A program made the position numbers and the translations under genes. Source: Haliotis rubra (Eukaryota). From it: 64,000 bases of DNA. The notes below the pieces were generated by a model that made no database searches, was not told where the DNA came from, and worked only from the letters and a program-made list of their open reading frames with translations. Shown here in pieces: positions 36,184-62,978 of the stretch (position 1 is the stretch's first letter; each line of letters begins with the position of its first letter). The stretch spans positions 310,001-374,000 of the forward strand of contig NW_025767227.1 of assembly GCF_003918875.1 (NCBI RefSeq), given 5' to 3'.

Positions 36184-37312
36184 ATGCAGGTCTCTTCTGA
36201 GGTCATGTACGTCGTTTTTTGGAAGTGTCGTTGCCACCGTCAGTGTCGTCGTATGGTACTACCGCCGTAACAAGTACACTGTTCCCGAACTTCATTGCCT
36301 GGACTCCGACCTTCATCGACACATCTTCAAAACCAAACCTGGGTTTACCTCCCCTTACCGGCCGCCATTTTGGCTACAGAACAACCATCTTCATACGATT
36401 ATAGCAACGTTGGTGCCGAAAACCAAAGTGACTTTCAAGCGCGAGTACGTGGATCTAGATGACGGAGGTGTGGTTGCCTTGGACTGGGCACAGGGTGGCT
36501 CTAAACCTGTTTCTGACACAAGCCCCATCCTCATTGTATTGCCTGGATTGACGGCCAGCGCGAAAGATAATGGAGAACTTTGCAACATGGCGTTAAAGAG
36601 AGGTTACCGAGTTGTGGTTTTCAATAAGCGTGGACACGGGGATTCAGTACTAGCGACACCGAAACTGCAAGGGTTTGGCGATGCGAAGGACATGAGACAC
36701 TGTGTGGAGTATTTACGGGACAAGAATCCCGCAGCAAAACTTGTGGGTATAGGCTCAAGTGCAGGGTCGGGCCTCCTTGCTTCCTATATGGGTGAATACG
36801 GAGCTGACGCCATCCTGGTGACCGGTGTATGTATATGCCCAGGATACGACGCCTTGGAGCTCTTTACCAAGCGGATGAATTTTCTTTACGAATTTCTTCT
36901 GCTTTCATCCTTGAAGAAGATCTTGAAGAAACATGCCAAGGTGTTATCGCCATTGCTTGATCTTGGTGCGGCGTACAAGGCAACACGTTTCATGGATTTC
37001 GACACCCAAGTCTATTGCAAGTTCTACGGGTATAAAGACATTATTGAGTACTGGAAACATAACAATCCAATGAGAAATATCCTCAATGTAAAGGTGCCCT
37101 TTTTGTGCATAAATAGCATGGACGATCCCATTTGTGCAGCCTGGAATATACCATTTAACATGTTTAAGGAAACTTCGGATAGGTTGCTGGTCACGACGAC
37201 CAAGGGAGGCCACTGCGGATTCCTTGAAGAATCCACACTGACGTCTTGGTCCGACCGACTGGCTCTTGATTACATCGACGCTGTGCTGGAGTTCAATACG
37301 GCTGCCAAATGA
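36184..37312 (+). CDS. ABHD15: ABHD15-like alpha/beta hydrolase copy 1 (375 aa if one extra T in the T6 run at 36215-36220 is removed)
   Basis: The ATG aligns with the paralogs. N-terminal hydrophobic anchor + WYYRR, DGGVVALDW, NKRGHG, PKLQGFGD, GSSAG, DDP and GGHCGF are all present. One +1 frameshift and no other lesion. Confidence 0.8.
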
Positions 37313-37923
37313 TCACAGACCAGATGGATGATCAAACTATACGTGAAATAGATGATCAAGGCTTAACTTTCGATGGCTGTGTACCTCTGTTACACGAAAG
37401 ATACTAGATTTACTAGACATGTGAGGAAAATATCAAATTTAAGATAATATCACCTGTTAATGAAAACTACCTCTTAATTTATACGTAAATTTACGAAGCA
37501 TTGCATATATTACCTGTTCGTGCTGCTCTAAGGCGATAATGTCATAATCGTTGTCCATCCATCGTATGTGGATTTCTACTGTGTGCATGCCATGTATTAT
37601 ATATTTACTCTTCCATTTATTTGTTTGTTTGTTGTTTATCGTCACTTAGAAATATTCCAGCTGTATCATAGACATTGAAGTCAGTTCTTTAACAACCGTT
37701 ACTTTTTTCCCTTTGTTATTTCCGTACAATTGTACAGAAAACACATCCAATACTTGTTCAATGTTTGATGGACATTCTTGGTGTACGCCTCAGCCCCGAC
37801 CTCACACTGCTGGAACATTGCTTGAAACACAACTCTTGCTCCCTAACGGAAGCCATGGTTTTCTTCTGTAGCTCACGAAAACACATATTTGAAAACATGT
37901 GATATCACATACCATTTCATTTC

Positions 37924-37929
37924 AATAAA
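37924..37929 (+). terminator. Candidate poly(A) signal, ABHD copy 1
   Basis: AATAAA in a context (atttcat-tcaataaagtca) conserved with copy 2 at 43681. Confidence 0.6.
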
Positions 37930-37964
37930 GTCATTTGTTATTTGCTTTGTTCTTGTTGCTATTT

Positions 37965-38180
37965 ACCCGTGAAGGTCCGGGTTAGAATTGATCTTCAGTA
38001 ACCCATGCTTGTCGTAAGAGGCGACTAACGGGATCGGGTGGTCAGGCTCGCCGACTGCGTAGATCGATGTTCATGCTGTTGATCACTGGATTGTCAGGAC
38101 CAGACTCGATTATATACAGACCGCCTCCATATAGCTGGAATATTGCTGAGTGCGGCGTAAAACTAAACTCACTCAATAGC
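37965..38180 (+). mobile_element. SINE-like family B (5' end intact, internal deletion)
   Basis: Perfect 14-bp TSD tcttgttgctattt. Confidence 0.92.
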
Positions 38181-39499
38181 TCTTGTTGCTATTTCTTAGA
38201 CTAGGATATATACCACCCCCTAACCCCAAACCAGCACCCTGTCATGGCAACTACGGCTGTGTGTGATGGGGCAAACGTCTAGATGCTATTTCATGCTGAC
38301 TTGCACTTACTCTGATGCTCCTCATCACGCAAAACAACTCGGCGAAACGTAACGGTGTACATGTGTGCAGATAGTTGCAGTAACGTTCGTAATTGTGTTT
38401 TGTCCTGATCATATCTGTAAAACTAAGAGGTATTCTTTCTGAAATCTTGCACACACAAACACCTTGCCGTTTACTTAGGGCTTTCGCTATTTAAGGATGT
38501 TTTAATTTTTTATTCGTCGTAATGACAGCAAGTGTGAGTTTGGAATTAGTCGTGTTCAGAGGACTCTCGTTTTGTACTTTGAGTGACCATGTATATCAGT
38601 CACAAGTACATGATATCACGCCAATGAGAAGATCAACTATAAAACGTACCGCGGACTGATTATAAAAAGCTGGAAGAATCATAAACGAAAACCAAAGCTA
38701 TGCGAAACGTTTGGCGTGTTTTTGAGGTAATCAGCCTTTGGTCCAGACCCGATTATCTACAAGCCTCCTTGCTATGGGTGTTTTATTCTCGAGCGAGCTA
38801 AACAATATTCATGTGCTGGATTCGAAACAGGGATTCTTGCCAGCTAAATGTAGAGCTTAACACCAATGCATATCAACATGCAGAGTACTGGGTCGTGTGT
38901 GTCACTCGTGGGCTACACACGTACATGCCAACCATCCAGATAGCTGCCACATATGGGGATGATAGGCCTTGAAGAAATATTTTCCTCACTTGCGTCTTCA
39001 CTCAATTAAATATGTCAATGTAAACAATATCCATTAACATTTGAAATGAATTGTGAGGGCCGTGTGGCTTATTTAACAATTGCACGAAGCAAAAGGAAAG
39101 CAATAATCCAGGAATTATGTTGGTTACTTAGGTTGGAGCAGGTTGTTATACCTTGTTGACAGATCATAAAGCTATATATCAGAAGACACGATCGTCATGC
39201 TATCTATAACAGCGAGGTCAGTGGCGGACATATGGTATACGAGGAGGAAGTACCAGTTGTGAAAGACGATTTCAGTATATCAAAGTTTATCAAGGTCATG
39301 GCCTGGCTTAAAACGGGAATACGTGGAATTGTGTGCATCTTTGTGTGTCAAAGACAATATTGTGTGGAGACATTGTGTGTTTTATTAATATAAGTCCATT
39401 GTGATGTATAACACAAATGCATGACCAATAATCAGACAGATCACCAGTCACAGTGACAATATCCGAATTAAAACTGGAATGTCCAAAAGGTACAAGACA

Positions 39500-39800
39500 C
39501 AGAAGTACATGTGTTCGACTGGGTTGAGATCTGATGGCCGGGTTAGCCACTCCTTGTGGACAATGGCGTCAACGACACTGGAACAATGTGTTCGCGTCCA
39601 TGAAGACGATGTCTGGTCGGAATGCATATGCATAGTGTCTCACATTGGGAATGCTCCCTATTGGACTGCAGATATGTCAGTGTGCCCAAATAAAGAAGGT
39701 TCTTTAAGTTCAACTGATCTTATCCCAAATTCTTATTGAGCACCTTCCGTAGAGAGATCCTCAGTCCAATCCAAACATGCGGTCAGTGGGAAGCGAATGC
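39500..39800 (-). pseudogene. Degraded Tc1/mariner transposase fragment
   Basis: EWLTRPSDLNPVEH resembles WPxxSPDLNPIE, and IVFMDAN in another frame resembles FMxDNA. Confidence 0.6.
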
Positions 39801-41440
39801 ACGCTCCTTGCATTACACAATAATAGATGACGATATGTCCGCACACAACGGGTGTGTGGTCGAAGCAAGCCCTGTGATTAGTCAACGCTTGTAAATCTTC
39901 ATATTTTCTATAAATTCGCAGGAATTTGTAATTTCATTGACTGCTTGCAATGGAAATGTAAAACTTTTTTTTCCCCCAACAATGGCTGCTCAAAAGAAAG
40001 CATCAGTTGTAAATGTCTCCTTAACAAGTATGAACCAACCAGAGGGCTTGCTTCAAGATCGTTTGGTTAAGAGTAAACATCGGGTTTCATTCGACTTGCA
40101 GAAAGAACAATAAAGAATTGGTAGGTGTCATGAGTGGTGCTCGATAGGCCAATCATCCATGATTGGGTGGGATGCACCGAAGTGTCCGGCCTTGTCATGA
40201 TGTATCGTACTGTGAAGCATTTCGAGACGGGGGTCATCTCAAATTTGTATTTATTTTTTTAAAAATATTTAATCCTCGCAAGACACGAGGGCCTGTGGCC
40301 TCACCTCCCGCCCACTATTAAGTCCGGGCTCCATCAATTACCACCACTATGATCCAATGTCCGGTCGAGGGAGCTTCATTGTATGTAATCAAGTAAACTG
40401 TTAAATCTGAAATGACTTGTATATAGTTGCTAGTTTGGAACACAAAAGAATTCATTATTCACATGGTATGGTAGATTTGAGTAACATTCATTTGTGTCTT
40501 ATATTACACGGTACGCGTGTAGGTAGCTGATGTCATTGAACTAACACTAACACAACAAAACATCATTACTTTAATCAGGCCACTATCCGTGCCATATTAA
40601 GTTCAATATACACTATTATTCAAAATACATGCATGGTGGTAGGACAATTGGCTATATTCAGCGTTCGAAATAACTGCCTGCCCGACCGCCCGAGACGGGT
40701 TATTTCCAACACGGACTGCCAGATTCTCAAATTCACCTGCCCGACGTCCGGGTTAAAATTTAGACATGTATATGAAGATATTGATCATATTTCAGGGTAA
40801 TAAATCATTATTAATTCACTCGTAAGAATAAATTATGAAATCCATTTGGATGATAAACTACTTCGCTTGTCAAACCTAAATTATTTGTGGGCAGGCATGT
40901 TTACATCTAACCAGCCCTGTGGTCTGGCTGAACTTTTTGGAGTTTCATACCCCGCAAAGTATATTTATGTACATACTAATTAAAACTCATTGTGTAAAGG
41001 GTAGAGGCGTGTATTTATTTATCTAGATAACTTTGCATTAGGTTAGCATTACGAGAAAACTAAGTTTATTTAACTGATCAATTACAGATTTGTTCTTAAT
41101 TTTAAAGTTTTAACATGTTTGGGTGAACATGTAAAAGTGGTGACAACAGTTTTTTTCTGAATTTGCTAAAGTAATTACAATTTAAAAGCGCATGATATTC
41201 TTCTCTTACGCAGTTATTCTGACATAGGTTCGTTCTATATAAAGGGTATATTATTCCATCCGAAATTGAATAAATCAAGCATTCTGAATAGTAGAGTCGT
41301 GTCCGAGCACCAAGGTGCTCTTGTAAAAAATTTTTTAAGAAAACAATTCTTTATGTGAACGATATCAGGTCTTACGTTTTGTTTGCAGACAAAACCCGTC
41401 GCCTGGATAATTGCAGCGATTTACACCTCTCCTGTGAAAA

Positions 41441-42575
41441 ATGCAGATCTCTCCAGAACCCATGTACGTCGTTTTGGGAAGTGTCGTTGCCATCGTCACC
41501 GTTGCTGTGTGGTACTACCGCCGTAACAAGTACACTCTTCCGGACCTTCATTACGTCGACTCCAACCTTCATCGACATATCTTGAAAACCAAACCTGGAT
41601 TTACCTCCCCTTACCGGCCGCCATTTTGGCTACAGAACAACCATCTTCATACGATTATAGCAACGTTCGTGCCAAAGCCCAAAGTGACTTTCAAGCGCGA
41701 GTACGTGGATCTTGATGACGGAGGTGTGGTTGCCTTGGACTGGGCACAGGGTGGCTCTAAACCTGTTTCAGACACAAGTACTATTCTCATTGTGGTGCCC
41801 GGGTTGACAGCGAGCGCTGACAATATGAGCGAACTTTGCAACATGGCGTTAAAGCGAGGTTACCGAGTTGTGGTATTCAACAAACGTGGACACGGGGACT
41901 CAGTACTGGCGACACCTAAAATGCAAGGGTTTGGTGATGCGAAGGATATGAGACACTGTGTGGAGTATTTACGGGACAAGAATCCCGCAGCAAAACTTGT
42001 GTCTGTAGGCTCCAGTGCAGGGTCGGGCCTCCTTGCCTCCTATCTTGGTGAATACGGAGCTGACTGTCATCTTGCAACAGGTGTGGCCATATGTCCAGCT
42101 TACAAAACTGTGGAATTCTTCACAAAACCCTTAAATTTGATCTACCAATTTCTACTTCTTTCGTCTGTGAAGAAAATCTTGAAGAAACATGCCAAGGTGT
42201 TGTCGCAATTGCTTGACCTTGATGCGGCGTACAACTCAAAATGTTTCATGGATTTCGATACCCACGTCTATTGCAAATTCTACGGGTATAAAGATGTGTT
42301 TGAATACTGGAAACATAACAATCCACTGAGAAATTATCTTAACATATCTGTTCCTATTATGTGCATAAGTAGCAAGGACGATCCCATTTCCCCTTGGCAG
42401 GAATATACCATTCCACTTGTTTCGTGAGAATTCGAACTGGCTGCTTGCGACAACATCCAAGGGAGGTCACTGCGGCTTCCTTGAAGAATCCACACTGACG
42501 CCTTGGTCCGACCGACTAGCTCTTGATTACATCGACGCTGTTCTGGAGTTCCAAGCTGCGGAGAATGAACTATAA
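41441..42575 (+). CDS. ABHD15: ABHD15-like alpha/beta hydrolase copy 2 (377 aa if one extra C in the C4 run at 42390-42393 is removed)
   Basis: Homology continues in the shifted frame through KGGHCGFLEES...DAVLEFQAAENEL* (TAA 42573-42575). Confidence 0.8.
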
Positions 42576-42620
42576 TTCACATAGGTGAATTCTATGAGTA
42601 TACGTTCTTATCAGTTTATC

Positions 42621-42787
42621 GGGGCGGTGGGGTAGCCTAGTGGTTAAAGCGTTCGCTCGTCACGCCGAAGACCCGGGTTCGAATCCCCAAATGGGTACAT
42701 TGTGTGAAGCTCATTTCTGGTGTCCCCCGCCGTGATATTGCTGGAATATTGCTAAAAGCGGCGTAAAACCAAACTCACTGACTCACT
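42621..42787 (+). mobile_element. SINE family A just after the ABHD copy 2 stop
   Basis: Near-consensus; TSD tcttatcagtttatc. Confidence 0.93.
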
Positions 42788-43376
42788 CTTATCAGTTTAT
42801 CAATGCTTACCTTCCCCATCGTCAATACAGTCACCAATCTTGGTAAGAAATTTAATGCTATTCTGTAGGATTTGATGGGTGTAATTTGCGGTTCTGTGTT
42901 CACAAACCAATTAAAAACATATACTAAGGGAACCAAATATAGGAACACATGAACGTACAATCGCTCCTTTATGCTTTTCCATAATTTTCCTCAATTCTGA
43001 GAAAATATAAAGGAATACTTCGATGTAGTGGTGTTCCCTTATTTGTCTCCGTCAGTATATATTTGTTCCACATCCACTACCGGCCAACGGTTAACTGTTT
43101 GACTAATGTTTGGGATAATTAGGCCGGTGTTGCCATCTTGCGTTAAATGACGTCATTGGGTACTTATATATCGGCGGTATGATTGTGGTATTGACTTAAT
43201 CGGCAATCTGGGAGGTGCAGTTATATACGCTCAGTGCAGATTTACACTGCACACATGCCGATATATTTTTTTCATTGTTTATGACATCAACAATTTACTC
43301 AAAAAAGTTCTTCAAATATTTTTTCATGTCGTTATTTATCTAGTATTTATTTGCTCTCTCCTTCATGACCTGGTAC

Positions 43377-43528
43377 GGCGGGGCATCCTTGTGGTTAAAG
43401 CGTTCACCAGTCACGCGGAAGAGCCAGGTTGGATTTCCAACAAGTGTACAATGTGTGAAACCCATCTTTGGTGTCTCCCACCGTGATATTGCTCAAAGAG
43501 GCGTAAAGCTTAATTTACTCACTCACTC
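43377..43528 (+). mobile_element. SINE family A (old)
   Basis: Diverged family consensus. Confidence 0.75.
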
Positions 43529-43680
43529 ATGACAAACATAAAGTTCGGGCTACGTTGGTGATGCACGTCTGTGATGCACTCCCCATCCTGTCTCCAATAA
43601 TGGTGGAATGTTACATTACACACTGCTCGGGAAGCAGCGGATCATTCATGAAATGTCCTTGTCACATTCAATTTCATCTC

Positions 43681-43686
43681 AATAAA
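43681..43686 (+). terminator. Candidate poly(A) signal, ABHD copy 2
   Basis: Homologous context to copy 1, followed by a GT-rich tract. Confidence 0.6.
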
Positions 43687-43810
43687 GTCAGCTGTTGCTT
43701 GTTGTCACGCTTGTTTGTATTTAATGGGCCGGGTCCATCCTGTAGGAAGGTTGAACACTAGATTGCATCATCTCTGTTCCTCTTACGATGAGAAACACAC
43801 GATCCTTTGA

Positions 43811-44336
43811 ATTCGTTGGTATCACATTAATTTTCGACTCGCTGTGCGCATGCGTAGAGCGTGTAAAAATATCCAGTGGTCAACTTCCGGTTTGGTCGTA
43901 TTAGCGATATTGTAAACACACTCTAAATAAATGCTGTATGAATATTATTTACGCGTGACAACTGTTCATAGTTGAGTACATACATCCACTTGCCTATGCT
44001 TTTCAATAATTGATGTCCTATTTTGGTGGCAACTGCATCAGAGATGTGTTTTTTTACTTGTGAGAAGGGGATGTGCAGGAAGGACGGTGGACGGGTGGTG
44101 GTGAGATGTGTTTATACAAGAGCATGTTAACAAACGTTAAGCTATTTATTTAACTGATTCCGGTCCCTTCCATTCATAAATAAATTGAGATCAGTTAAAT
44201 TCGACATAAAACCATATATTTGTTTTGATGTTTGCTTTCTTTAGAGTGTGTTTACACTATCGGTAAAGCTTACGACCAAACCGGAAGTTGGCCCGTGGAT
44301 ATTTTTACACGCTCTGCGCATGTGAAACCAACGAAT
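43811..44336. mobile_element. MITE with about 100-bp imperfect TIRs
   Basis: agagcgtgtaaaaatatcca...caacttccggtttggtcgta...gtaaacacactctaaa is mirrored at 44240-44336. Confidence 0.85.
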
Positions 44337-45051
44337 ACTCATCCAATCAAATGACACTGATGGGCTAGAGGAATTGTGTGCTAAAATCTCTGATCTCTGA
44401 GATTTGGTGGCAACGTGATCTATGGTATTTCTAGTAAGATAAGTCAGATATGATAAATGGATCATGGAGGGTGGAATATGTCTGTTAATCTCTTCCTCTT
44501 TCGTGAAGAAAGTACTCATCTTTGTAAAATGTCAGCCAGTCAGATAAACACACTTCATGCATATCATTCAGTGGCTTGTATAAATACCAGGAGAATGGTA
44601 AGCACCGCTTACTATGTTATAACGAAAAACGTTTGTTTGTGTTTACAAAATGACATTTTCGAATTGAAATACAAAAACTTGAAACGATTATATTATCCAT
44701 ACTACATTGAGATGGTATATGGTGTTATCCTAAATGTCCGGGTTTGATACAATTTCTGCTGGACTAGTGTGAGTCAGTACTTGTGCTCTGTAGACTGGCA
44801 TATTGGTTTGTTAACTTCTTTGAGCGCCATTAAGGAATTGGTGTGATACAAATTCTGTATTATTAATATAAGTGACGGTTCGATGTAGCTCGCTGGATAA
44901 CGGTGTGAGTAGCTACACCGAAACGTCAGTCATATTAATAAGATGAATATCCATAGAACTCTCACCGTTGTTTATTGGTTTGTTGCTTAACGTGACGTCA
45001 CGCTCCACAGTATCCCAGCTGCACGACGGCAGTAAGGAATCCGTTGAGCCT

Positions 45052-45201
45052 GGGCCCCGTTTCACAAAGCTCTCGTAGGCCTAAGATCTCGTCACTTTTC
45101 TCGTAGCATTCGTACTCCCTATGTTACAGTATTAGAGGTACGAATGCTACGAGAAAAGTGACGAGATCTTAGGCCTACGAGAGCTTTGTGAAACGGGGCC
45201 C
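45052..45201. mobile_element. Hairpin MITE with perfect 64-bp arms, inserted in an old family-B SINE
   Basis: 45052-45115 is the exact reverse complement of 45138-45201; GGGCCCC termini in a CTG context (PIF/Harbinger-like, inferred). Confidence 0.9.
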
Positions 45202-45236
45202 TGGACTATACCATACATTGTATGAGCATCGATCTG

Positions 45237-45510
45237 TCATCTGCATAGAGCAAATCTACCTAGAACCTGTAACATTAAGCACATTTCATCATCTATACAT
45301 TCGGTTTGAGCTCCCCTGGAGCCTGCTTTGTAAAATGGAGGAGACTCAAGGTCATTTATAAATGATGAGAATAAGAGAGGTGATAGGTTTCCTGAAACCT
45401 GATTGAGATGACGATGTATAATGGTTTCACTTTCTGTAAATTTAGTCAGTCGATCATTCAAAATACTTGTAAATAGTTTTCCAAAGCAACTTATACACAT
45501 CTGAACTACA
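45237..45510 (-). mobile_element. LINE reverse-transcriptase remnant with internal deletions
   Basis: ISCFGKLFTSILNDRL and GNLSPLLFSSFINDL motifs. Confidence 0.8.
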
Positions 45511-46386
45511 ACCGCCACTTAAATAAAGTTCTAAACAAGCGAAGAAGATGAACACTCTATTATAACAATGTTTTGAAAAGAAATCTATCTACTCCCGACA
45601 TGGATTATCCTTCCCGGCACCGTATCTTTAGCTTTGGCGGTACTTCCTTGGAAATTAGCTCTCCCGATAAATCCGAAATATATTTTTTTGCCTTCCCGGG
45701 ACTTCTGAAAAATAAATTGTAGCCTTCCCGGCACGACACCCGACATTTACATATTGTTGGGATGTAAATCTGACGGGTGTATGTCTAGAGGATAATTACC
45801 CAGTCCCCCAGTCTGACAGTAGTCTCAATAACAATATAAGACAATATGTATGCGTGCGTGCGTGTGTATGTACGTGTGTGTAAAATGAATGCTTGATTGG
45901 GGTAGCTTGTATTTTTGCTGTATACGCAAAGCAAATCATAAGCACCTTTAAATCCTTCCGTTGCTAAGTCTATATCTATATTTTTCAGACTGAATCGTTC
46001 AGATAACCAACACAAATATTTTCACTCAAAAGACCAGAGTGATGATGCAGTTAAGACTTTGAAGATGATGTCCCAAATCCTCTGACATGTGCGTGCGCCT
46101 AACGAACACATTTCCCACAAATGTCACCACTTGCAGTGTCAAGTTTTAAGTTCTTCTTACCAGTGGAATATCCGCCCCTGCTAAACATAACGTAACTGGT
46201 TCCAGTAGACTGGCAAGTACGTATCGTCGATGACTCATACAGTGATTTCAACAACTGACCTTTTCATTTTATTACTTATTATTCTTCGTGTATATCGAAG
46301 AAAGTATACTTTATATTGATATAAATCCTTCTTAACATATTTGTTGAGGTATGTAGTCGGCTGGGCTTGTCATGTAAACACACCAA

Positions 46387-46447
46387 CCCGTGAAGATCCG
46401 GGTTAGAATTGGTCTTCAGCAACCCATGCTTGTCATAGAGACGACTC
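46387..46447 (+). mobile_element. Family B 5' head only
   Basis: acccgtgaagatccgggttagaattggtcttcagcaacccatgcttgtc. Confidence 0.8.
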
Positions 46448-47133
46448 AAACCGAGCCACGAGTCTCATTAACCAATTCAGACAATGACCTACTTTTCACC
46501 CGATCCGAATTTTTCGTGTGAATGTGAAAAGAGACACTACAAACAACTATGGTTACACTAAATTGCAATTCCTTGTTTCATAAGAAAATAGTATTTACAA
46601 ATTAATATTTTAATTTTATAGTTAAAAAAATTGTATTTCTATATTTTATGTTGAGTTTAAGGCAGCATGTCAGTAATTAAGACGTCAAAGACTGACCCTG
46701 TTTGAAGAGGTCGTACAACGATTCACAATTCATATGGCTCACTGGTTACACCTATGATGTGTTCCGTGCGCTTATTAAGTGTATTTTCGTAACGTACAAT
46801 GTGATTGATATAATATCAAGTACGTACCAGACCGCCAAACGTTTCTAGCGGGAGAGCCTCGTTTAGAGATTTCCACGATTTCCAGGTTTCCGTTTGTCAG
46901 AGGTCGCTGTACGACAGAGCACGCTGCACGACCTGTTTGCAAGGATTAGAAGGAGCGTAGTGTTGCAATATACAAGTAATTAGGTGTATCAAATAATACT
47001 GATTAACATTTATAGATCCAGTTGAATGAGTTGGCCTCAAAATTACGGACTGGTTATTGTACTAAGTTGCGCAATAGGACGGAACCCAGTCAGATGGAAA
47101 CGAGACTGTTGTGTAATCAATGGTTTGACTTGT

Positions 47134-47305
47134 CGGGATCGGGTGGTCAAGTTCGTTGACTTGCTTGACATGTCATCGTATCCCAATTGTATAGATCGAT
47201 GTCCATGCTGTTTATCACTGGTTTGTGTGGTCGATTAAGTACAGACGGCCGCCATATAGCTGTAATATTTCTGAGTGCGACTTTAAACAACAATCAATCA
47301 ATCAA
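47134..47305 (+). mobile_element. Family B 3' part (diverged)
   Basis: cgggatcgggtggtca...gccgccatatagctg...(CAAT)n. Confidence 0.75.
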
Positions 47306-50303: not shown

Positions 50304-50310
50304 TACTACC
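50258..50310. repeat. (TAC)n microsatellite
   Basis: Direct inspection. Confidence 0.95.
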
Positions 50311-50609: not shown

Positions 50610-51736
50610 ATGTTGTTCTCTTCAGAGGTCGTGTACGTGCTTACCGGATGTGTCGTTACCATCGTCTGCGTCGTCGCATGGTACTACCGCCGTAACAAGT
50701 ACACTCTTCCTGAACTTCATTACGTGGACTCCGACCTTCATCGACACATCTTAAAACCAAACCTGGATTTACCTCCCCTTATCGGCCGCCATTTTGGTTA
50801 CAGAATAGCCACCTTCACACGATTATAGCAACGTTGGTGCCGAAAACCAAAGTTACCTTCAAGCGAGAGTACGTGGATCTAGATGACGGAGGTGTGGTTG
50901 CCTTGGACTGGGCACAGGGTGGCTCGGAACCTGTTTCAGACACAAGTACAATTGTTATAGTGGTGCCTGGTTTGACGGCCAGCGCTGAAGACATGAGCGA
51001 ACTGTGCAGCATGGCGTTAAAGCGAGGTTACCGAGTTGTGGTATTCAACAAACGTGGACACGGGGATTCAGTACTGGCGACACCTAGAATGCAAGGGTTT
51101 GGCGATCCTAAGGACATGAGGCACTGTGTGAAATATTTACGCCACAAGAATCCGGCAGCAAAGCTTGTAGCTGTAGGCTCCAGTGCAGGGTCGGGACTTC
51201 TTGCCTCCTATCTAGGTGAATACGGAGCTGACTGTATTATATCAACCTGTGTGGCCATATGTCCAGCATTCGATGCCTTGGACCTGTTTACAAAACCCTT
51301 AAACTTCATCTACCAATTTCTACTTCTTTCGTCTGTAAAGAAAATCTTGAAGAAACATTCCAAGGTGTTATCGCCATTACTTGATCTTGAAGCGGCCTAC
51401 AACGCAAAATGTTTCATGGATTTCGACACCCAAGTCTATTGCAAATTCTACGGGTATAAAGACGTCTTTGAGTACTGGAAGCATAACGATCCAATGAGAA
51501 ATATTCTCAATGTCTCGGTACCATTTATGTGTATAAATACCGGGGACGATCCCATTTCCCTCGCCAGGAATGTACCAGTCGCCATGTTTAAGGAGAATTC
51601 GAATTGGTTACTGGTGATGACGACCAAGGGAGGTCACTGCGGTTTGCTTGAAGAATCCACACTGGCGCCTTGGGCTGACCGACTGGCTCTTGATTACATC
51701 GACGCTGTGCTGGAGTTCAAAGGAGCTGACGAATAA
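50610..51736 (+). CDS. ABHD15: ABHD15-like alpha/beta hydrolase copy 3 (375 aa if one A is restored in the A4 run at 50753-50756)
   Basis: The N-terminus MLFSSEVVYV...WYYRRNKYTLP is in a frame offset by one base from ORF 50834-51736; the triad motifs are intact (GSSAG, DDP, GGHCGL). Confidence 0.8.
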
Positions 51737-51921: not shown

Positions 51922-52612
51922 TTCCGACTCAGAGTGTCCTAAAGGACGGGTGCTAGAATGGGTGGGTCTTGTTCCGGACCAGAGTGTCCTAAAGGACGGG
52001 TGCTCGAATGGGTGGGTCTTGTTCCGGACCAGAGTGTCCTAAAGGACGGGTGCTCGAATGGGTGGGTCTTGTTCCGGACCAGTAGGTCCTACAGGACGGT
52101 TGCTAGAATGGGTGGGTCTTGTTCCGGTACAGAGTGTCCCAAAGGACGGGTGCTAGAATGGGTGGATCTTGTTCCGGACCAGTAGGTCCTAAAGGACGGG
52201 TGCTAGAATGGGTGGGTCTTGTTCCGGTATAGAGCGTCCTAAAAGACGGGTGCTAGAAGGGGTGGATCTTGTTCCGGACCAGTAGGTCCTAAGGGACGGG
52301 TGCTAGAATGGGTGGATGTTGTTCCGGAACAGTAGGTCCTAAAAGACGGGTTCTAGAATGAGTGGGTCTTGTTCTGGTACAGAGTGTCGGGTGCTAGAAT
52401 AGGTGGATCTTGTTCCGGACCAGTAGGTCCTAAAGGACGGGTGCTAGAATGGTCGGGTCTTGTTCCGGTACAGAGTGTCCTAAAGGACGGGTGCTGGAAT
52501 GGGTGGATCTTGTTCCGGTACAGAGTGTCCTAAAGGACGGGTGCAAGAATGGGTGGATCTTGTTCCGGTACAGAGTGTCCTAAAGGACGAGTGCTAGAAT
52601 GGGTGGGTCTTG
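51922..52612. repeat. 50-bp GC-rich minisatellite, about 13-14 copies, downstream of the ABHD copy 3 stop
   Basis: Unit ggtgggtcttgttccggaccagagtgtcctaaaggacgggtgctagaatg. Confidence 0.96.
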
Positions 52613-53273
52613 TGTTGCACGACTGCGCTGAACGAAGTTACCGATTTTGTACTGACGTGTGAGGTTTTTTGTTGCTGTGATAATTTAATATGCAACCTCA
52701 TGATTTGTTATGATTATACCATTTTAAAGAATTACACGCGGATTTCCACAGTGTACCTACTGTTTGCTTTTTCATGTTCCCTCTCAATAAACACGAAAAT
52801 GTTAGAATTAAGCTTGGTGTTCTTAATCATATTTCAAAAGGCCTTAACACGTGTTGCAGCTGGTATCATCACTATTTGATAGCGAGTCACAAACATATTC
52901 TCATGATATGGTCGAATATTACAGTCGACATTGTTTCAGTAGAGATTTCCTGTTATTATGGAAACTAGATGATTTATTCAGGTGTTTACAATGTATGACC
53001 TCAATAATTGGAGGCATTGGTTTTGAAAGATAACTGGACGCGATCATGTTTGGTGTGTGCTGCTTTACGCCATATTAAGCAATAACCCAGCCGTATGACG
53101 ACAGTAAGTCGACACCTCAGTAGTCGACATCATGAGTACGCGACTGGGATACGACGACATCCACAACCAATCCACTTAGTCGCCTCTTGTGACAAGTATA
53201 GTTTGGTTGTCAAGTTAAATTTCTAAACCGCAATTTCTATGAGAGTGTTCCCTTTGAGGTATTACTCCCATGT

Positions 53274-53438
53274 GGGGTGGTAGGACAGCCTAGTGGTGAA
53301 AGCGCTGGCTTGTAACACCGAAGACCCGGGTTCGATTCCCCACATGGGTACAATGTGTGAAGCCCGTTTCTGATGTCCCCCGCCGTGATGTTGCTGGAAT
53401 ATTGCTAACAGCGGCGTAAAACTAAACTCTCATTCACT
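53274..53438 (+). mobile_element. SINE family A
   Basis: Family consensus. Confidence 0.87.
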
Positions 53439-53975
53439 ACTGCCAAGTCTTGCTGCTGATAAATTAACCTCTTAATTTAATTGTCTTGTTTGTTGTTCAT
53501 ACGACACAAATAATGAACAACGTTTTTTAATTCCCTATGTGGAAAAAGTAAAAAGTGGGGAGTGAAGAAATTGGAAAATAGTATTAAAAGTCGCTAGGGA
53601 GATGAGAGGTTTGTGTATATCTGTAGGAGCGTGTAACCCTTGTATGCAGTCTCTGACGAGAAATGAATATAGAAATCAATATTAAACTCAAACTTAGTAG
53701 ACAATTTGAGTTTGGTATATATTATTACTTAAGTTGTTTGGGCTTTTTTTATTTAAAAAATGCAGTTGAGTTAAAAATTCAGCTGTTTCAAATTGTCAAA
53801 CTCAGTTTGAAATTTGAGTAAAAACTTAAGTTTGTTTCGAGAAATCGGGGCCAGAGGTTTGTGTATATCTGTAGGAGCGTGTAACCCTTGTAAGCAGTCT
53901 CTCACGAGAAATGAATATAGCTACGTATCCTTCCTACGCGCAATGATACGTTGTCCGATTTCATCCAACCACAGC

Positions 53976-54143
53976 GGGGGCGGTGGGGTAGTCTAGTGGT
54001 TAAAGCGTTGGCTCGTCACGCTGAAGACCCGGGTTCGAATCCTCACATGGGTACAATGAGTGAAGCCCATTTCTGGTGTCCCCCGCCGTGATATTGCTGG
54101 AATATTGCTAAAAGCGGCGTAAAAGCAAAACTCAGTCAGTCAG
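53976..54143 (+). mobile_element. SINE family A
   Basis: Family consensus; TSD ccaaccacagc. Confidence 0.92.
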
Positions 54144-54710
54144 CCAACCACAGCCACAGGCTAAACAATCGAATTTATGCACGTTAAACATTGCATTCAG
54201 CTGAATTAATTCAATCGATGAAATATACACATCAACCCATGTCTCGTAGTGATGTCAGAACTGACTTGTATCTGTCATACTGTCTGAGGCCTGTGTAAAA
54301 TGTTAGTTATATTTCAGTTAGTTTTTTGTAAGTTAATGTATTGCATATTCCTTAAAATAAGTCGCTCGACTGAGGTTGCAGTGTTTACACACTCACCTCA
54401 CACGTGTTGCGCGTTGTAAGAGTCCATCAGTCATGTTATCTCATGCTATCTTTCTGTTTTTCACTAAGGCTTGTCCACGGGGTAGTAGGGTGACGAGCCT
54501 GTGTCATAACGGTCCTTCTCACTAAATATCGAAAAGATGATAACATGCGGCAATTGACATGTTTTCTTTTATAACCTACGTTCATGTCAATGGTCCTCTC
54601 ATTGAGCCCGCAACCTGACTAGGTTATCTTCTCCAATGGTGTCGTCCGTCTGAACCCGACTTTTTTGTAATTTAACTGCTGTTAATAAGGAGATATAGCT
54701 CATGTGTAGC

Positions 54711-54900
54711 TGACAGGCTCCATGGTGCATTGGAGACAGCGCCTGCCTGTAGAGTGGAAAGCAGGTGGTTCGATCCCCAGCCGGGCCAAGGTTCAAACAT
54801 GGCACCTAGCGCTTGGCATTGAGGGGATGAAACGGTGACTGGCCCGCTTGGAAATGGTATAGTCTGTATGAGTAGGGGATCTTGGTATACTGCGTCATTA
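54711..54900 (+). mobile_element. Diverged tRNA-headed SINE (family C-like)
   Basis: GGTTCGATCCCC B box followed by gcgcttggcatt, similar to family C. Confidence 0.5.
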
Positions 54901-54982
54901 TAAGGGGTGAGGGGGTGGGGTGGGGGAGAGCACACACACATACATGCACGCGCGCTAACACACACGCTCTCTCTCACCAACA

Positions 54983-57900
54983 GGACAGTCGTAGGGCTAA
55001 GATGATAGTAACTCTTCTACTTTAACACATTTTTACCACATTACGACAGTCGTAGCACTAAGGTGACAGTAACGCTTCTACTTTAACACAGGTTTAGGAC
55101 AGTCGTAGCACTAAGGTGACAGTAAGTCTTCTACTTTAACACAGGTTTAGGACAGTTGTAGCGCTAAAAAAACTAACTCTTCTACTTTAACACATGTTTA
55201 CGACAGTCGTAGCGCTAAGGTGATAGTAACTCTTCTACTTTAACACAGGTTTAGGACAGTCGTAGCGCTAAAAAAAGTAACTCTTCTACTTTAACACAGG
55301 TTTACGACAGTCGTAGCGCTAAGGTGAAAGTAACTGTTCTACTTTAACACAGTCAGGTTTAACTCTTCTACAGGTTTACGACAGTCGCGCTAAGGTGATA
55401 GTAACTCTTCTACTTTAACACAGGTTTAGGACAGTCTAAAAGCTCTTCTACTTTAACACAGGTTTACGACAGTAACTGTTCTACTTTAACACAGGTTTAG
55501 GACAGTTGTAGCGCTAAGGTGATAGTAACTCTTCTACTTTAACACAGGTTTACGACAGTCGTAGCGCTAAGGTGATTAGTAACAGTTCTAGCACAGGTTT
55601 AGGACAGTTGTAGCGCTAAAAATAACTCTTCTACTTTAACACAGTCGTTTACGAAATTACGACAGTCGTAGCGCTAAGGTGACAGTAACTCTTCTAATTT
55701 AACACATATTTACGACAGTCGTAGCGCTAAGGTGATAATAACTCTTCTACTTTAACACAGGTTTACGACAGTCGTAGCGCTAAGGGTGATAGTAACTCTT
55801 CTACTTTAACACATATTACGACAGTCGTAGCGCTAAGGTGACAATAACTCTTCTACTTTAACACATATTTACGACAGTCGTAGCGCTAAGGTGACAGTAA
55901 CTCTTCTACTTTAACACATATTTACGACAGTCGTAGCGCTAAGGTGACAGTAACTCTTCTACTTTAACACAGGTTTACGACATTACGACAGTCGTAGCGC
56001 CAAGCGCTAAGGTGACTTTAACACAGGTTTACGATTTACGACAGTCGTAGCGCTACGACAGTAAGTCTTCGCTAACATATTTACGACAGTCGTAGCGCTA
56101 AGGTGACTAACTCTTCTACTTAAACAGGGTTTACGACAGTCGTAGCGCTAGGGTGATAGTAACTCTTCTACTTTAACACATATGTACGACAGTCGTAGCG
56201 CTAAGGTGACAATAACTCTTCTACTTTAACACATATTTACGACAGTCGTAGCGCTAAGGTGACAGTAACTCTTCTACTTTAACACATATTTACGACAGTC
56301 GTAGCGCTAAGGTGACAGTAACTCTTCTACTTTAACACAGGTTTACGACATTACGACAGTCGTAGCGCTAAGGTGACAGTAACTCTTCTACTTTAACACA
56401 GGTTTACGACAGTCGTAGCGCTAAGGTGACAGTAACTCTTCTACTTTAACACAGGTTTACGACAGTCGTAGCGCTAAGGTGATAGTAACTCTTCTACTTT
56501 AACACAGGTTTAGGACAGTTGTAGCGCTAAAAAAACTAACTCTTCTACTTTAACACAGGTTTACGACAGTCGTAGCGCTAAGGTGATAGTAACTCTTCTA
56601 CTTTAACACAGGTTTACGACAGTCGTAGCGCTAAGGTGACAGTAACTCTTCTACTTTAACACAGGTTTACGACAGTCGTAGCGCTAAGGTGACAGTAACT
56701 CTTCTACTTTAACACAGGTTTACGACAGTCGTAGCGCTAAGATGATAGTAACTCTTCTACTTTAACACAGGTTTACGACAGTCGTAGCGCTAAGGTGACA
56801 GTAACTCTTCTACTTTAACACAGGTTTACTCTTCTACTTTTAACACAGGTTTACGACAGTCGTAGCGCTAAGGTGATAGTAACTCTTCTACTTTAACACA
56901 GGTTTACGACAGTCGTAGCGCTAAGGTGACAGTAACTCTTCTACTTTAACACAGGTTTACGACAGTCGTAGCGCTAAGGTGACAGTAACTCTTCTACTTT
57001 AACACATGTTTACGACAGTCGTAGCGCTAAGGTGACAGTAACTCTTCTACTTTAACACAGGTTTACGACAGTCGTAGCGCTAAGGTGATAGTAACTCTTC
57101 TACTTTAACACATATTTACGACAGTCGTAGCGCTAAGGTGACAGTAACTCTTCTACTTTAACACAGGTTTACGACAGTTGTAGCGCTAAAAAATAACTCT
57201 TCTACTTTAACACATATTTACGACAGTCGTAGCGCTAAGGTGACAGTAACTCTTCTACTTTAACACATTTTACGACAGTCGTAGTAGCGCTCGTAGCGCT
57301 TCTGACTTTAGTAACTCTTCTACTTTAACACAGGTTTACGACATTACTTTACACAGTCGTAGCGCTAAGGTGACAGTAACTCTTCTACTTTAACACATAA
57401 CACAGGTTTACGACAGTCGTAGCGCTAAGGTGATAGTAACTCTTCTACTTTAACACAGGTTTAACACATATTTACGACAGTCGTAGCGCTCGTAAGGTGA
57501 CAATAACTCTTCTACTTTAACACAGGTGACAGTAACTCTTCTACTTTAACTCTTCTACTTTAACACATATGTACGACAGTCGTAGCGCTAAGGTGACAAT
57601 AACTCTTCTACTTTAACACATATTTACGACAGTCGTAGCGCTAAGGTGACAGTAACTCTTCTACTTTAACACATATTTACGACAGTCGTAGCGCTAAGGT
57701 GACAGTAACTCTTCTACTTTAACACAGGTTTACGACATTACGACAGTCGTAGCGCTAAGGTGACAGTAACTCTTCTACTTTAACACAGGTTTACGACAAT
57801 CGTAGCGCTAAGATGATGGTTACTCTTCTACTTTAACACATATTTACGACAGTCGTAGCGCTAAGGTGACAGTAACTCTTCTACTTTAACACAGGTTTAG

Positions 57901-59180
57901 GACAGTTGTAGCGCTAAAAAAAACTAACTCTTCTACTTTAACACAGGTTTACGACAGTCGTAGCGCTAAGGTGATAGTAACTCTTCTACTTTAACACAGG
58001 TTTAGGACAGTTGTAGCGCTAAAAAAAGTAACTCTTCTACTTTAACACAGGTTTACGACAGTCGTAGCGCTAAGGTGATAGTAACTGTTCTACTTTAACA
58101 CAGGTTTACGACAGTCGTAGCGCTAAAAAAAGTAACTCTTCTACTTTAACACAGGTTTACAACAGTCGTAGCGCTAAGGTGATAGTAACTGTTCTACTTT
58201 AACACAGGTTTAGGACAGTCGTAGCGCTAAGGTGATAGTAACTCTTCTACTTTAACACAGGTTTAGGACAGTTGTAGCTCTAAGGTGATAGTAACTCTTC
58301 TACTTTAACACAGGTTTACGACATTACGACAGTCGTAGCGCCAAGGTGACGGATAACACTTCTACTTTAACACATGTTTACGAAATTACGACAGTCGTAG
58401 CGCTAAGGTGACAGTAAGTCTTCTAATTTAACACATATTTACGACAGTCGTAGCGCTAAGGTGACAATAACTCTTCTACTTAAACACAGGTTTACGACAG
58501 TCGTAGCGCTAGGGTGATAGTAACTCTTCTACTTTAACACATATGTACGACAGTCGTAGCGCTAAGGTGACAATAACTCTTCTACTTTAACACATATTTA
58601 CGACAGTCGTAGCGCTAAGGTGACAGTAACTCTTCTACTTTAACACATATTTACGACAGTCGTAGCGCTAAGGTGACAGTAACTCTTCTACTTTAACACA
58701 GGTTTACGACATTACGACAGTCGTAGGGCTAAGGTGACAGTAACTCTTCTACTTTAACACAGGTTTACGACAATCGTAGCGCTAAGATGATGGTTACTCT
58801 TCTACTTTAACACATATTTACGACAGTCATAGCGATAAGGTGATAGTAACTCTTCTACTTTAACACAGGTTTAGGACAGTTGTAACGCTAAGGTGACAGT
58901 TACACTCCTAATTTAACACGTTTACGACATTACGACAGTCGTAGCGCTGAGTTGACTGATAACACTTCTACTTTAACACATGTTTACGAGCTTACGACAG
59001 TCGTAGCGCTAAGGTGATAGTAACTGTTCTACTTTAACACAGGTTTACGACATTACGACAGTTGAAACACTAAGGCAATTGTAAGTTCCTTACTGTAACA
59101 CAGAGCTATGACAGTCGCATACCTGAGGTCATCGTGACCCTCTTACTTTAACATAGACTACCGACAGTCGCAGCCCTGAG
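54983..59180. repeat. 53-bp satellite, about 4.2 kb (roughly 78 copies)
   Basis: Unit acaggtttacgacagtcgtagcgctaaggtgacagtaactcttctactttaac. Confidence 0.97.
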
Positions 59181-59726
59181 ATCGCTTCGTGCAACAGCCG
59201 CCGGGGTAGGGGTCCAAATTCCGAACTCGTATTCCAGGTTTGTGTATTCTGTTTTGAAAATTTTATAATTCAGAATCCTTCTCATATTTGAGTTATTTAC
59301 ACTCTCAACACAGAGAGGGTCAGGTGGTTATACGTTTGCTCGTCACGTCTTAGACCCGTGACACATATTCTACACAACGGTACCCAGCGTGAGACACGCT
59401 TCTGTCCCCGCCGTGATGTCATATTCATGAAGGTATAAAGGTCAATCGTCGTACGACACGAGTATCACCCACACAAAATCACTTTCGTAATAACACAGTG
59501 GAAAGGTACTGTACAGTCACTGGCCGGTCTCGTGTTATCTAACACAAGCTACAGTCCATGGTTTATCTGTCGTCACTCACGCCTGGCCATCGGTCAATGA
59601 GATGCCAAAGTCAAGAGCATCACACCACCATGTATAACAAGATATAAACGGTTGACAGGACAGAATGAGTTCAACCACGACGGCTCGCCTCTAGATACAG
59701 GTCAGTATCACTACTTACTGCACTGA

Positions 59727-59875
59727 CAGGCGCGTAGCAAGCCAATTTGTTCGTGTAAACCCGATAGGTTGCAAAGCTTTATATTTAGATAGTATTGAGG
59801 GCTTGCCCAACCCTTTTTATCAAAAATCATGTGTAAGCCCGGGCTTTTTTTTTCGTAATGATAGCTACGCCCCTG
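59727..59875. mobile_element. Small MITE, TIR cagg(c/g)gcgtagc
   Basis: 12-bp TIR with one mismatch; CAGG termini. Confidence 0.7.
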
Positions 59876-60852
59876 ACTTGTTCTACACAGTAAAACCGGA
59901 TCGAAGTAGACTGCCCGGCGAAAGAAAGTATGCCCCTATGTTCGATTGTGACTGAAATTAAAACTAACAAAAAATGGTTATTCGATGGTGATATAAGTGA
60001 AATAAATATTTGGACCTAGCAGTGTATCGGTGAATATTCTATGCCTGTTGAAATCAAGGGTAAAACTGTCGAAATTGTATCACAGTACAAATATAGTGGC
60101 ACTATTATCGGAAATAAACTACAGTCAGCTCCAAACACTGATTTTATTTTTAAGAAATGCCGGCAATGATTGTATTTTATGCGCAAACTGAGATCTTTCA
60201 TCGTAAGCAAAAAGGTGATGCTGATGGCCCTCGTAAAAGCAAATATCAACAAAATCATTTTAATTGCAAGTAAAATATCTGGTGTGTTTCGGATTTCTTT
60301 CTCTTTATAATTCCAGTGTTCTTAATATCGCTGAATGAAGTTTATCTGATTCCAGACACGTTTTATTTTCTGAATATAATCTTTCACCTTCAGGCAGCCG
60401 ATACCAAATGCCCCGTTTTAAAGCAAAAAATGTTCAAAATTCTTCTATTCCAGCAAGTATTCGCCTTTTAAATGACTGTTAACTTTGTTTCTCTGTTGTA
60501 TTGTTTTGTGTTTTCTTAACTACAAAATGTTTGATATTTTAATGTTTAACTATGTGATAACTTTCAAATGTAAAAAGAATTCCCCTAGGGTAATAAAGTA
60601 CTGTCATTGTCATTGTCAAACAAATTCACGTTCATAATTTGGGGTTCGGACCTGATATTAACACATCTACTTTCATGTGCCCGGCATGGTTGATACTAAA
60701 TCATCTTGATATAGATGGAACATTGCTGCATGTCGTTAACTGATAAATTTTATGAAAGAATTTTATGAATATCTTTGGGTTCGAAACTGTGTGAAACATA
60801 GGATGTATACACGTTTGTATTCCCGTACACCCTATTAATTCAAATAAGTCCA

Positions 60853-61100
60853 GCCCGGGAAGATCCTGGTGAGAATTGATCTTCAGTAACCCATGCTTCT
60901 CGTAAAAGGCGACTAACGGGATCGGGTGGTCAGGCTCGCTGACTTGGTTGACACATGTCATCGGTTCCCAATTGCGTAGATCGATGCTCATGTTGTTGAT
61001 CACTGGATTGTCTTGTCCAGACTCGATTATTGAACGACCGCCGCCATATAGCTGTAATATTGCTGAGTGCGGCGTAAAACTAAACTCTCTAACACTCACT
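60853..61100 (+). mobile_element. SINE-like family B, full length
   Basis: Aligns end to end with 5858-6104. Confidence 0.9.
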
Positions 61101-61494
61101 TGAATGGGTTCGGATTGTCACAGTGTCTGATGACAAATGGACGGTAATGCAACGGAACATTTCCAGTGTTCTGGAGATATCCTTGGAATTGTGATCAGTG
61201 CTTGGTCTTCTGACTTGGGTTGTAATTGTTGATCTGATATTGCATATACAAGCTTGACATGAAAGGCAGCTACAATAGGAATACGACGACGCTCTTTGCC
61301 AATTATAGACTGAGGCAAATTAAATGGAGTCCTTGGCGTTACAACCTGTAAAAATATCATAAGTGCTTGACATTTGTACACGAGTACAAAGTACAAGGGG
61401 TATCAACACCTGATGACCTGATTATGGCTGCGATCTCGTTCTCAGTAGTGGTGATACTGTCATGTCAGTATGTTTCTCTGTAACATATTGCTGC

Positions 61495-61657
61495 GCGGCG
61501 GCCTAGTGGTTAAAGCGTTCGCTCGTCACGCTGAAGACCCGGGTTCGACTCCCCACATGGGTTAAATGTATGAAGCCCTTTTCTGGTGTTCCCTGCCGTG
61601 ATATTGCTGGAATAATGCAAAAGTGGCGTAAAACTAAACTCACTAGTACTCATTCAC
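61495..61657 (+). mobile_element. SINE family A
   Basis: Family consensus. Confidence 0.85.
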
Positions 61658-61853
61658 ATTTTGCGGTTCGCAGCGACAGGTCATATAGCTTCGAAACTAG
61701 TTGATACAGATGCTTTAATGTGATGACCCAATATTGAAAATAGTAGATTATAAACCAATTATATTTTACAGAGTCCCAAACACTTACGATTCTTTATTGT
61801 GGTTTTTAGTTAGGTTGGCATCTGTAAAACCCTTGACGATTGGATTCCCAACA

Positions 61854-62978
61854 ATGCAGTTCATGCTGGAGACAATGTATGTCGCTACCGTCGGCGTGAT
61901 CGCCCTTTTCGTCTTCGTGGTATGGTACTACCGCCGCAACAAGCACACACTTCCAGACCTGTATTATCTTGACTCGGACCTCCATCGACACATCATCGGA
62001 ACCAAGCCTGGTTTTACCTCCCCTTACAGGCCGCCATTTTGGCTGCAGAACAACCATCTACATACTTTCGTTGCAGCCTTGATTCCAAAAGTAAAACTTT
62101 GTTTCAAGCGGGAGTACATCAATCTGGACGATGGCGGCGCTGTTGCCTTGGACTGGGTACAAGACAAACTTGACTCTCTTACCGATACAAGTCCGATTTT
62201 CTTAGTGTTGCCGAGTCTATCGGCGTCCGCGGATGATATGGCCGAACTCTGCGACACTGCGTCGAAGCGAGGTTACCGAGTTGTAGTGTTTAACAAACGT
62301 GGACACGGGGATTCCGTATTGGCGACGCCAAAACTGCAAGGGTTTGGTGATGCGAAGGATATGAGACGCTGTGTGGAGTATTTGCACGACGAACACCCCG
62401 CAGCAAAAATTGTCGCTGTTGGCTCCAGTGCAGGGTCGGGACTTTTGATGTCTTATCTCAGTGAATACGGAGCTGACTGTATCCTAGCAACAGCGGTATG
62501 TCTATGCCCAGGGTATGACTCATTAGACGTGTTTACTAAGCCTATGAATAATGTCTATGAATATATTCTACTTTCGTCCTTGAAGAAAATTCTGAAGAAA
62601 CATACCAAGATGCTGTGTCAGTTAATTGACTTGAGAGCGGCGTTCAGAGCGACAAATTTTAAGGAATTTGACAAACAGGTCTACTGTAAATTCTACGGTT
62701 ACAAAGACAGTCTTGAGTATTGGCAGCGTCAGAACCCGATGAGAAATATCGATAATGTATCGCCTCCCATCATGTGTGTTACCAGCTTGGATGATCCCAT
62801 ATTCATGGCCAGATATGTACCATTCAACATTTTTCGAGAGAATTCGAATTGGTTGCTAGTGACTACAAACAAGGGAGGTCACTGTGGTTTCATTGAAGAA
62901 TCGACACTGAAATCTTGGTCTGATAGACTAGCACTTGACTATATCGACGCTGTGTTAGAATTCCAAGCTCATAAATAG
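61854..62978 (+). CDS. ABHD15: ABHD15-like alpha/beta hydrolase copy 4, intact, 374 aa
   Basis: Uninterrupted ORF; ATG chosen by alignment with the paralogs; GSSAG at 62421-62435, DDP and GGHCGF. The ABHD15 assignment rests on recalled similarity (LQxFGD.xD, PAA.L, GS.LL.SYLGE.G); the ABHD1/2/3/15 family call is firmer than the ortholog call. Confidence 0.92.
   Translation: MQFMLETMYVATVGVIALFVFVVWYYRRNKHTLPDLYYLDSDLHRHIIGTKPGFTSPYRPPFWLQNNHLHTFVAALIPKVKLCFKREYINLDDGGAVALDWVQDKLDSLTDTSPIFLVLPSLSASADDMAELCDTASKRGYRVVVFNKRGHGDSVLATPKLQGFGDAKDMRRCVEYLHDEHPAAKIVAVGSSAGSGLLMSYLSEYGADCILATAVCLCPGYDSLDVFTKPMNNVYEYILLSSLKKILKKHTKMLCQLIDLRAAFRATNFKEFDKQVYCKFYGYKDSLEYWQRQNPMRNIDNVSPPIMCVTSLDDPIFMARYVPFNIFRENSNWLLVTTNKGGHCGFIEESTLKSWSDRLALDYIDAVLEFQAHK

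Follow-up and report, generated by a model that had tools for sequence, protein, structure and literature searches.

Mammalian ABHD15 lacks the catalytic nucleophile and stabilizes PDE3B (Xia et al. 2018, PMC6390945), as the preliminary description of the locus studied here had stated. The locus lies in a 64-kb stretch of the Haliotis rubra genome on NW_025767227.1 (hereafter the window, whose positions are used below), and consists of a tandem array of four ABHD15-like hydrolase genes that retain the nucleophile serine. The question it raises is whether these genes represent abalone ABHD15 as such, multiplied and still active, or a different member of the family. Our analysis makes it probable that they are four functional, transcribed single-exon genes encoding serine-retaining AB hydrolase 4 proteins, and that they form a gastropod paralogue lineage of ABHD15. 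The family is already known and the array genes are already annotated, mostly as 'ABHD15-like'; a literature search returned no paper that treats ABHD15 together with either abalone or serine hydrolases of invertebrates.

Four intronless paralogues with nucleophile, acid and histidine motifs

A tblastn search with copy 4 over the whole window recovered exactly four intronless paralogues, all on the forward strand, and no further matches. Copy 1 (36184-37312) and copy 3 (50610-51736) each encode a protein of about 375 amino acids (aa) when read with an X at a frame break, copy 2 (41441-42575) encodes 377 aa after a spurious base is taken out, and copy 4 (61854-62978) is an intact open reading frame (ORF) of 374 aa. 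All four translations carry GSSAG, DDP and GGHCG in the order of the AB hydrolase 4 family, with GSSAG and GGHCG encoded at 36752-36766 and 37205-37219 in copy 1, at 42008-42022 and 42462-42476 in copy 2, and at 51176-51190 and 51629-51643 in copy 3. Each also begins with a hydrophobic 19-mer (mean Kyte-Doolittle hydropathy 1.9-2.3) followed by WYYRRNK. Pfam searches with an array protein matched Abhydrolase_1 (2.6e-13) as well as Hydrolase_4, and the RefSeq protein P0006, 'ABHD15-like [Haliotis rubra]', is a model of copy 2. The tblastn matches and translations thus confirm the co-oriented array, with its N-terminal anchor and three motifs, that the preliminary description had reported. Its count of four genes of about 375 aa holds directly for copy 4, the only open copy; the frames of copies 1-3 are broken as assembled and reach that length when single-base indels are read through, as they were in that description.

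The array falls beside ABHD15 and outside the ABHD15 orthogroup

The array proteins can be aligned end to end with ABHD15, ABHD3 and YheT family members in phmmer comparisons and in trees, and are members of the AB hydrolase 4 family (ABHD1/2/3/15, YheT, EMB8). A phmmer scan identified 5,773 relatives, of which 286 reached E <= 1e-30, and its 20 named representatives included vertebrate ABHD3, starfish ABHD3-like, 'ABHD1/3', Capsaspora, liverwort EMB8-type and Polypterus ABHD15 proteins. The best vertebrate matches were ABHD15 representatives (E ~1e-49 to 1e-48), against 8e-41 for ABHD3. Most matches of the word searches were invertebrate proteins carrying the name 'ABHD15-like'. RefSeq names differ among relatives of the array, the H. 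rufescens orthologue of copy 4 being called 'phospholipase ABHD3-like' and a Gigantopelta relative 'EMB8-like', and because they flip between ABHD15-like, ABHD3-like and EMB8-like they cannot settle the subfamily.

Taken at face value, the latter two names would place the array in a different named subfamily, be it ABHD1/3, ABHD2 or plant-type EMB8, and turn its ABHD15 label into a misnomer, a reading that the phylogeny makes highly improbable. On a tree of 87 rows (tree 2), a 66-row clade (support 100/99) unites oomycete proteins with a metazoan group (99/90) to which the array and ABHD15 both belong, whereas vertebrate ABHD3 (gecko, Corvus), Patiria ABHD3-like, JGI 'ABHD1/3', Capsaspora and Chromosphaera proteins form a separate ABHD1/3 clade (98/94) and the Riccia EMB8-type plant proteins a clade of their own. 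The array does not group with ABHD1/3, and both the phmmer scores and tree 2 bear out the earlier proposal that its nearest vertebrate relative is ABHD15 rather than ABHD3. No ABHD2-named protein occurred among the word-search matches and the 20 named phmmer representatives, and a search with an alignment of distant matches, aimed at ABHD1/2/3, returned only bacterial YheT-type and protist proteins; the trees were built without ABHD2 and without a named ABHD1.

The oomycete proteins at the base of the ABHD15 superclade (P0056, P0069 and P0307, from Pythium, Plasmopara and Globisporangium) carry the elbow G-x-S-A-G-S-G-L-L and are nearer to the animal proteins than ABHD3 or plant EMB8-type proteins are, a placement that could reflect either old eukaryotic ancestry or gene transfer.

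Within the metazoan group of tree 2, the array clusters with the Gigantopelta 'EMB8-like' protein, Patella caerulea P0013 and one more protein (86/87); the next branch to unite with this cluster is a second abalone family (83/90). The ABHD15 orthogroup, a 45-row clade in tree 1 (96/87) and a 35-row clade in tree 2 (81/81), does not include the array. It follows the species tree, with hemichordates beside echinoderms and vertebrates, then ecdysozoans and molluscs. Joining the array clade to molluscan ABHD15 costs 53 log-likelihood units and is rejected by the approximately unbiased (AU) test (p = 0.00275), applied to a group picked after the tree was seen. Both Patella and Gigantopelta have one gene in the array clade and another in the ABHD15 clade. 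In these trees, the array is a gastropod lineage paralogous, not orthologous, to ABHD15.

Abalone also has an ABHD15 of its own. In H. asinina, on the same chromosome as the array and about 145 kb from it, an intronless gene (P0302, L007:3001-4194) encodes a 397-aa protein in which GTGAG replaces GxSxG, and this protein groups at 100 with a Gigantopelta ABHD15-like protein, inside molluscan ABHD15. Judged by this placement, the ABHD15 orthologue of abalone, as seen in H. asinina, is a separate gene that lacks the serine, which argues that the array is a paralogue.

These observations bear directly on the reading of the preliminary description, which equates the array with abalone ABHD15, as an expanded lineage of active enzymes that would report directly on the ancestral activity of a vertebrate pseudoenzyme. 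RefSeq indeed calls most array-type proteins 'ABHD15-like', ABHD15 is their best vertebrate match, and the two share the 100/99 clade; yet those names are unstable among close relatives, both careful trees and the AU test separate the array from the orthogroup, Patella and Gigantopelta hold one gene per clade, and H. asinina has the serine-less orthologue P0302. We consider that reading very unlikely: on the phylogenetic evidence, the array is a serine-retaining paralogue lineage and not an active ABHD15.

The motifs that flank the nucleophile had been offered as an ABHD15-like signature. Bacterial YheT-family proteins also carry GGHCG and DDP, which are therefore ancestral motifs, shared across the family and uninformative on affinity to ABHD15, and we rejected them as markers.

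Variation at the nucleophile position in ABHD15 and a second abalone array

The residue at the nucleophile position varies widely across the ABHD15 orthogroup and its relatives. It is Gly in turtle, frog and Polypterus ABHD15 and in most molluscs, echinoderms, Priapulus and Tachypleus, and Ser in hemichordates, the chiton Liolophura, Owenia and Nematostella. Ser in the context x-E-S-[ST]-G is found in ABHD15 of Parambassis (P0161) and Apteryx (P0162) and in P0389, which has a vertebrate-type elbow. The elbows of these sequences, S-E-S-S-G or A-E-S-T-G, indicate that the statement that ABHD15 has no nucleophile may not be true of all vertebrates. The presence of Ser at this position switches at least five times over an 83-row tree. 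DDP is invariant, and GGHCG is kept in every serine-less lineage, with rare changes at the last Gly or the His. It is almost certain that ABHD15 was ancestrally a serine hydrolase.

The second abalone family identified above is also a tandem array. Its members (P0303, P0458) are intronless 370-aa paralogues encoded on the opposite strand of the same chromosome, 35-55 kb beyond the first array and outside the window, past whose right end they are expected at about 35-55 kb; they have 42% identity to copy 4 and form the sister of the first-array clade (83/90). Their elbow, A-Y-S-A-G, keeps the serine and has Ala at the first Gly. At least five paralogues are present in H. rufescens (L005:3033-11113) and three in H. 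cracherodii (L006:2613-19676), where a sulfotransferase gene adjoins them. RefSeq names for members of this second array are ABHD3-like, EMB8-like or uncharacterized.

Tentatively, and with somewhat more doubt than belief, these patterns can be drawn together into a scheme in which ABHD15 turned into a pseudoenzyme several times independently, and gastropods kept, beside an ABHD15 without the serine, two sister lineages that retain it, are expanded in tandem and are missing from vertebrates (the first and second arrays). If the scheme is true, a single abalone chromosome would hold a natural enzyme/pseudoenzyme pair, and the conserved Asp-His pair of ABHD15 would point to residual chemistry or a ligand-binding role.

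Frameshifts in copies 1-3 and the quality of the assembly

As assembled, the ORF is uninterrupted only in copy 4, and copies 1, 2 and 3 each contain a single 1-bp indel by a homopolymer. In alignments, the T6 run at 36215-36220 of copy 1 has one T more than all other copies and orthologues, shifting the frame past residue 12, and copy 3 has one base absent past HRHI (50751-50753), reading CTT-AAAA against CTT[C/G]AAAA in the other copies. The C4 run at 42389-42392 of copy 2, for which both alignments and reads were available, has one C extra just past DDPIS and would remove the His; the H. asinina orthologue asin_b has CCC at this site. Eight orthologues and paralogues of H. cracherodii, H. 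asinina and H. rufescens lack all three indels.

Short-read contigs of four public runs (X1, X3, X5 and X7), two from the best-matching organism and two from a relative about 4% divergent, were aligned to window positions 36601-42600. In all four runs the contigs omit one letter at 42390 at full depth (X1: 143.4 of 143.4), and the copy 2 frameshift is therefore an assembly error. X1 and X3 also omit one letter at 41150, in the spacer, a second 1-bp error within 6 kb. The published H. rubra assembly is Nanopore-based and was polished with two rounds of Racon and one of Pilon (PMC6774278). The three frameshifts are best read as Nanopore consensus errors, as the reads establish for copy 2; for copies 1 and 3 the alignments make the same origin likely.

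The breaks in copies 1 and 3 bear on a further alternative, a decaying array in which H. rubra retains function in copies 2 and 4 only, these two being pseudogenes with genuine frameshifts. Their frameshifts are present in the deposited assembly, and the end branch of copy 3 (0.11) is the longest among window copies 1-3. Set against this, the one break that was checked with reads proved to be an artefact, with a second assembly error in the same 6 kb; both breaks are single-base changes beside homopolymers, followed in each copy by about 1.1 kb with no other stop or indel; the ratio of nonsynonymous to synonymous substitution rates (dN/dS) is 0.16-0.23; and the orthologous H. cracherodii array is intact. 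Decay is thus unlikely, and four functional genes remain the preferred reading.

The errors have consequences beyond this locus. The RefSeq model P0006 bypasses the copy 2 frameshift by means of an invented intron, at the cost of about 95 residues, the cap and the acid among them. As copy 2 proves, a single-base frameshift in the Nanopore assembly of H. rubra can be artefactual, and other genes called 'broken as assembled' in this genome need read support.

Conservation, selection and duplication history

The same four genes, in the same order and all open, are present in H. cracherodii, and at least two array copies were found in each of H. asinina and H. rufescens, within the 21-23 kb of sequence compared. 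The preliminary description had spoken of a lineage-specific expansion; the tandem array is real, but it is older than the split between H. rubra and H. cracherodii and has single relatives in Patella and Gigantopelta.

Copy 1 is 89% identical to its orthologue in H. asinina (P0005), with a dN/dS of 0.16, and copy 4 has 84% identity to its orthologues in H. rufescens and H. cracherodii, with a dN/dS of 0.15-0.16. Over all comparisons, dN/dS is 0.14-0.25 among the four copies and 0.12-0.16 to orthologues, values which indicate that the array is maintained under purifying selection. The synonymous divergence (dS) is ~0.4 among copies 1-3 and >1.1 between copy 4 and the others, and it marks copy 4 as the oldest paralogue. 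The array would then descend from an old tandem duplication, in which copy 4 split first from the rest and copies 1-3 arose afterwards.

In H. cracherodii, copies a, b and c cluster together (96/98) and show higher dN/dS among themselves (0.32-0.41), while copies 1 and 2 of H. rubra have H. asinina genes as their partners. The grouping of the H. cracherodii copies suggests gene conversion or independent duplication in that lineage. With the second array included, the locus is a conserved cluster of at least seven related predicted membrane hydrolases (four plus three in H. cracherodii) under purifying selection, and may be relevant to lipid metabolism.

Evidence for transcription

Run X7, whose library type was guessed to be RNA, derives from a related organism about 4% divergent and not from the assembled individual. 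One X7 contig (37253-37896) spans the 3' part of copy 1 and about 580 nt past its stop, so that 37313-37896, on the forward strand, is the probable 3' untranslated region of this gene. Copy 2 is covered from 41386, 55 nt upstream of the ATG, through the end of the aligned stretch. Unique spacers have practically no X7 depth, and the one at 38201-39800 has none except a trace in one bin. This pattern of coverage fits transcription of the array genes.

Very high-copy repeats lie between copies 1 and 2 (37800-38200, 39800-40400 and 40600-41000); at 38001-38200 the contig depths sum to as much as 5e7, and 37965 and 38175 are the end points of many contigs.

Several points weigh against four functional, transcribed paralogues of ABHD15. 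ABHD2 and a named ABHD1 are absent from the trees, the deep metazoan branches are poorly resolved, with the orthogroup at only 81/81 in tree 2 and the base a polytomy, and the group submitted to the AU test was chosen post hoc. The breaks in copies 1 and 3 could be real, and the transcription evidence comes from a library that was guessed to be RNA and from a divergent relative.

Predicted structure and activity

The AlphaFold2 model of copy 4 has a predicted local distance difference test (pLDDT) score of 94.8 and a predicted template modelling (pTM) score of 0.91, and its DSSP assignment comprises an alpha/beta core together with a helix at residues 2-28 and a helical cap (223-293). The predicted nucleophile, Ser192 (codon 62427-62429, forward strand, as are those that follow), sits in an elbow between strand 186-191 and helix 193-208; the predicted acid is at Asp313 and Asp314 (62790-62795), past strand 306-311, and the predicted base, His343 (62880-62882), follows strand 333-338. 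At the level of secondary structure, the Ser, acid and His of the model occupy their canonical places in the fold. Each array protein, of about 375 aa, would thus have a single membrane helix at its N terminus and an alpha/beta-hydrolase core with a helical cap and a complete predicted Ser-Asp-His triad.

Foldseek matched the model to esterases and lipases with probability 1.00, the nearest being esterases, monoglyceride lipases and ABHD6 at 12-19% identity. A PDB sequence search gave a best match of only E = 0.007 and no solved close relative. Because the structural matches are generic esterases and lipases at such low identity, no substrate can be inferred from the structure. By analogy with ABHD3, ABHD2 and yeast Eht1/Eeb1, we infer that the array proteins are membrane-bound serine esterases or lipases acting on lipid esters. 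The catalytic domain is probably cytosolic, since positive charges (RRNK) come after the anchor helix, an orientation more in keeping with lipid turnover inside the cell than with digestion by a secreted enzyme.

Flanking features

Upstream of the array, the window contains a matrixin (Peptidase_M10) exon on the reverse strand (5087-5548), and in H. rufescens the copy 4 orthologue is closely followed, on its downstream side, by a hemopexin-domain matrix metalloproteinase (MMP) gene (L004:16333-23396, reverse strand); MMP genes therefore flank the array. An ORF at 27363-27812 of the window has many weak coiled-coil and low-complexity Pfam matches and probably represents a tandem repeat, not a gene.

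Comparison with known systems

Among the known relatives, bacterial YheT is a distant outgroup that has GGHCG and DDP in common with the array at 21-25% identity, and the plant EMB8-type proteins are likewise a distant outgroup. Their elbows read GFSLGGN in the bacterial YheT family and GWSLGAN in the EMB8 type.

ABHD3 is a phospholipase for medium-chain and oxidatively truncated phospholipids. The ABHD1/3 group, including ABHD3, resembles the array in family, N-terminal anchor, Ser-Asp-His order and a likely lipid-ester hydrolase mechanism. It differs in forming a separate clade (98/94), in its 29% identity (P0380) and in its motifs, with the elbow G-V-S-M-G-G, the acid DDVF and the histidine GGHIAF in ABHD3 as opposed to GSSAG, DDP and GGHCG in the array.

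Vertebrate ABHD15, the nearest vertebrate relative by score, shares with the array the AB hydrolase 4 family, the 100/99 superclade, an N-terminal hydrophobic segment, DDP and GGHCG. It has Gly at the nucleophile position in turtle, frog and Polypterus, whereas the array keeps the serine of GxSxG, and it is longer, at 400-516 aa against about 375 aa. The array differs further in being a tandem of four genes, all intronless and paralogous to ABHD15.

Further parallels are the serine-retaining ABHD15 orthologues of Saccoglossus, Ptychodera, Glandiceps, Liolophura and Owenia. Like the array proteins, to which they are 41-47% identical, they combine the elbow G-x-S-A-G-S-G-L-L with DDP and GGHCG in a protein of similar length; unlike them, they lie inside the ABHD15 orthogroup, where the hemichordates are sister to echinoderm and vertebrate ABHD15. 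Because of this position, they are closer proxies of ancestral ABHD15 activity than the array, which had been proposed as a possible guide to that activity and gives way here to the hemichordate, chiton and annelid orthologues. Together with the abalone paralogues, these serine-retaining orthologues offer possible routes to the lost substrate of ABHD15.

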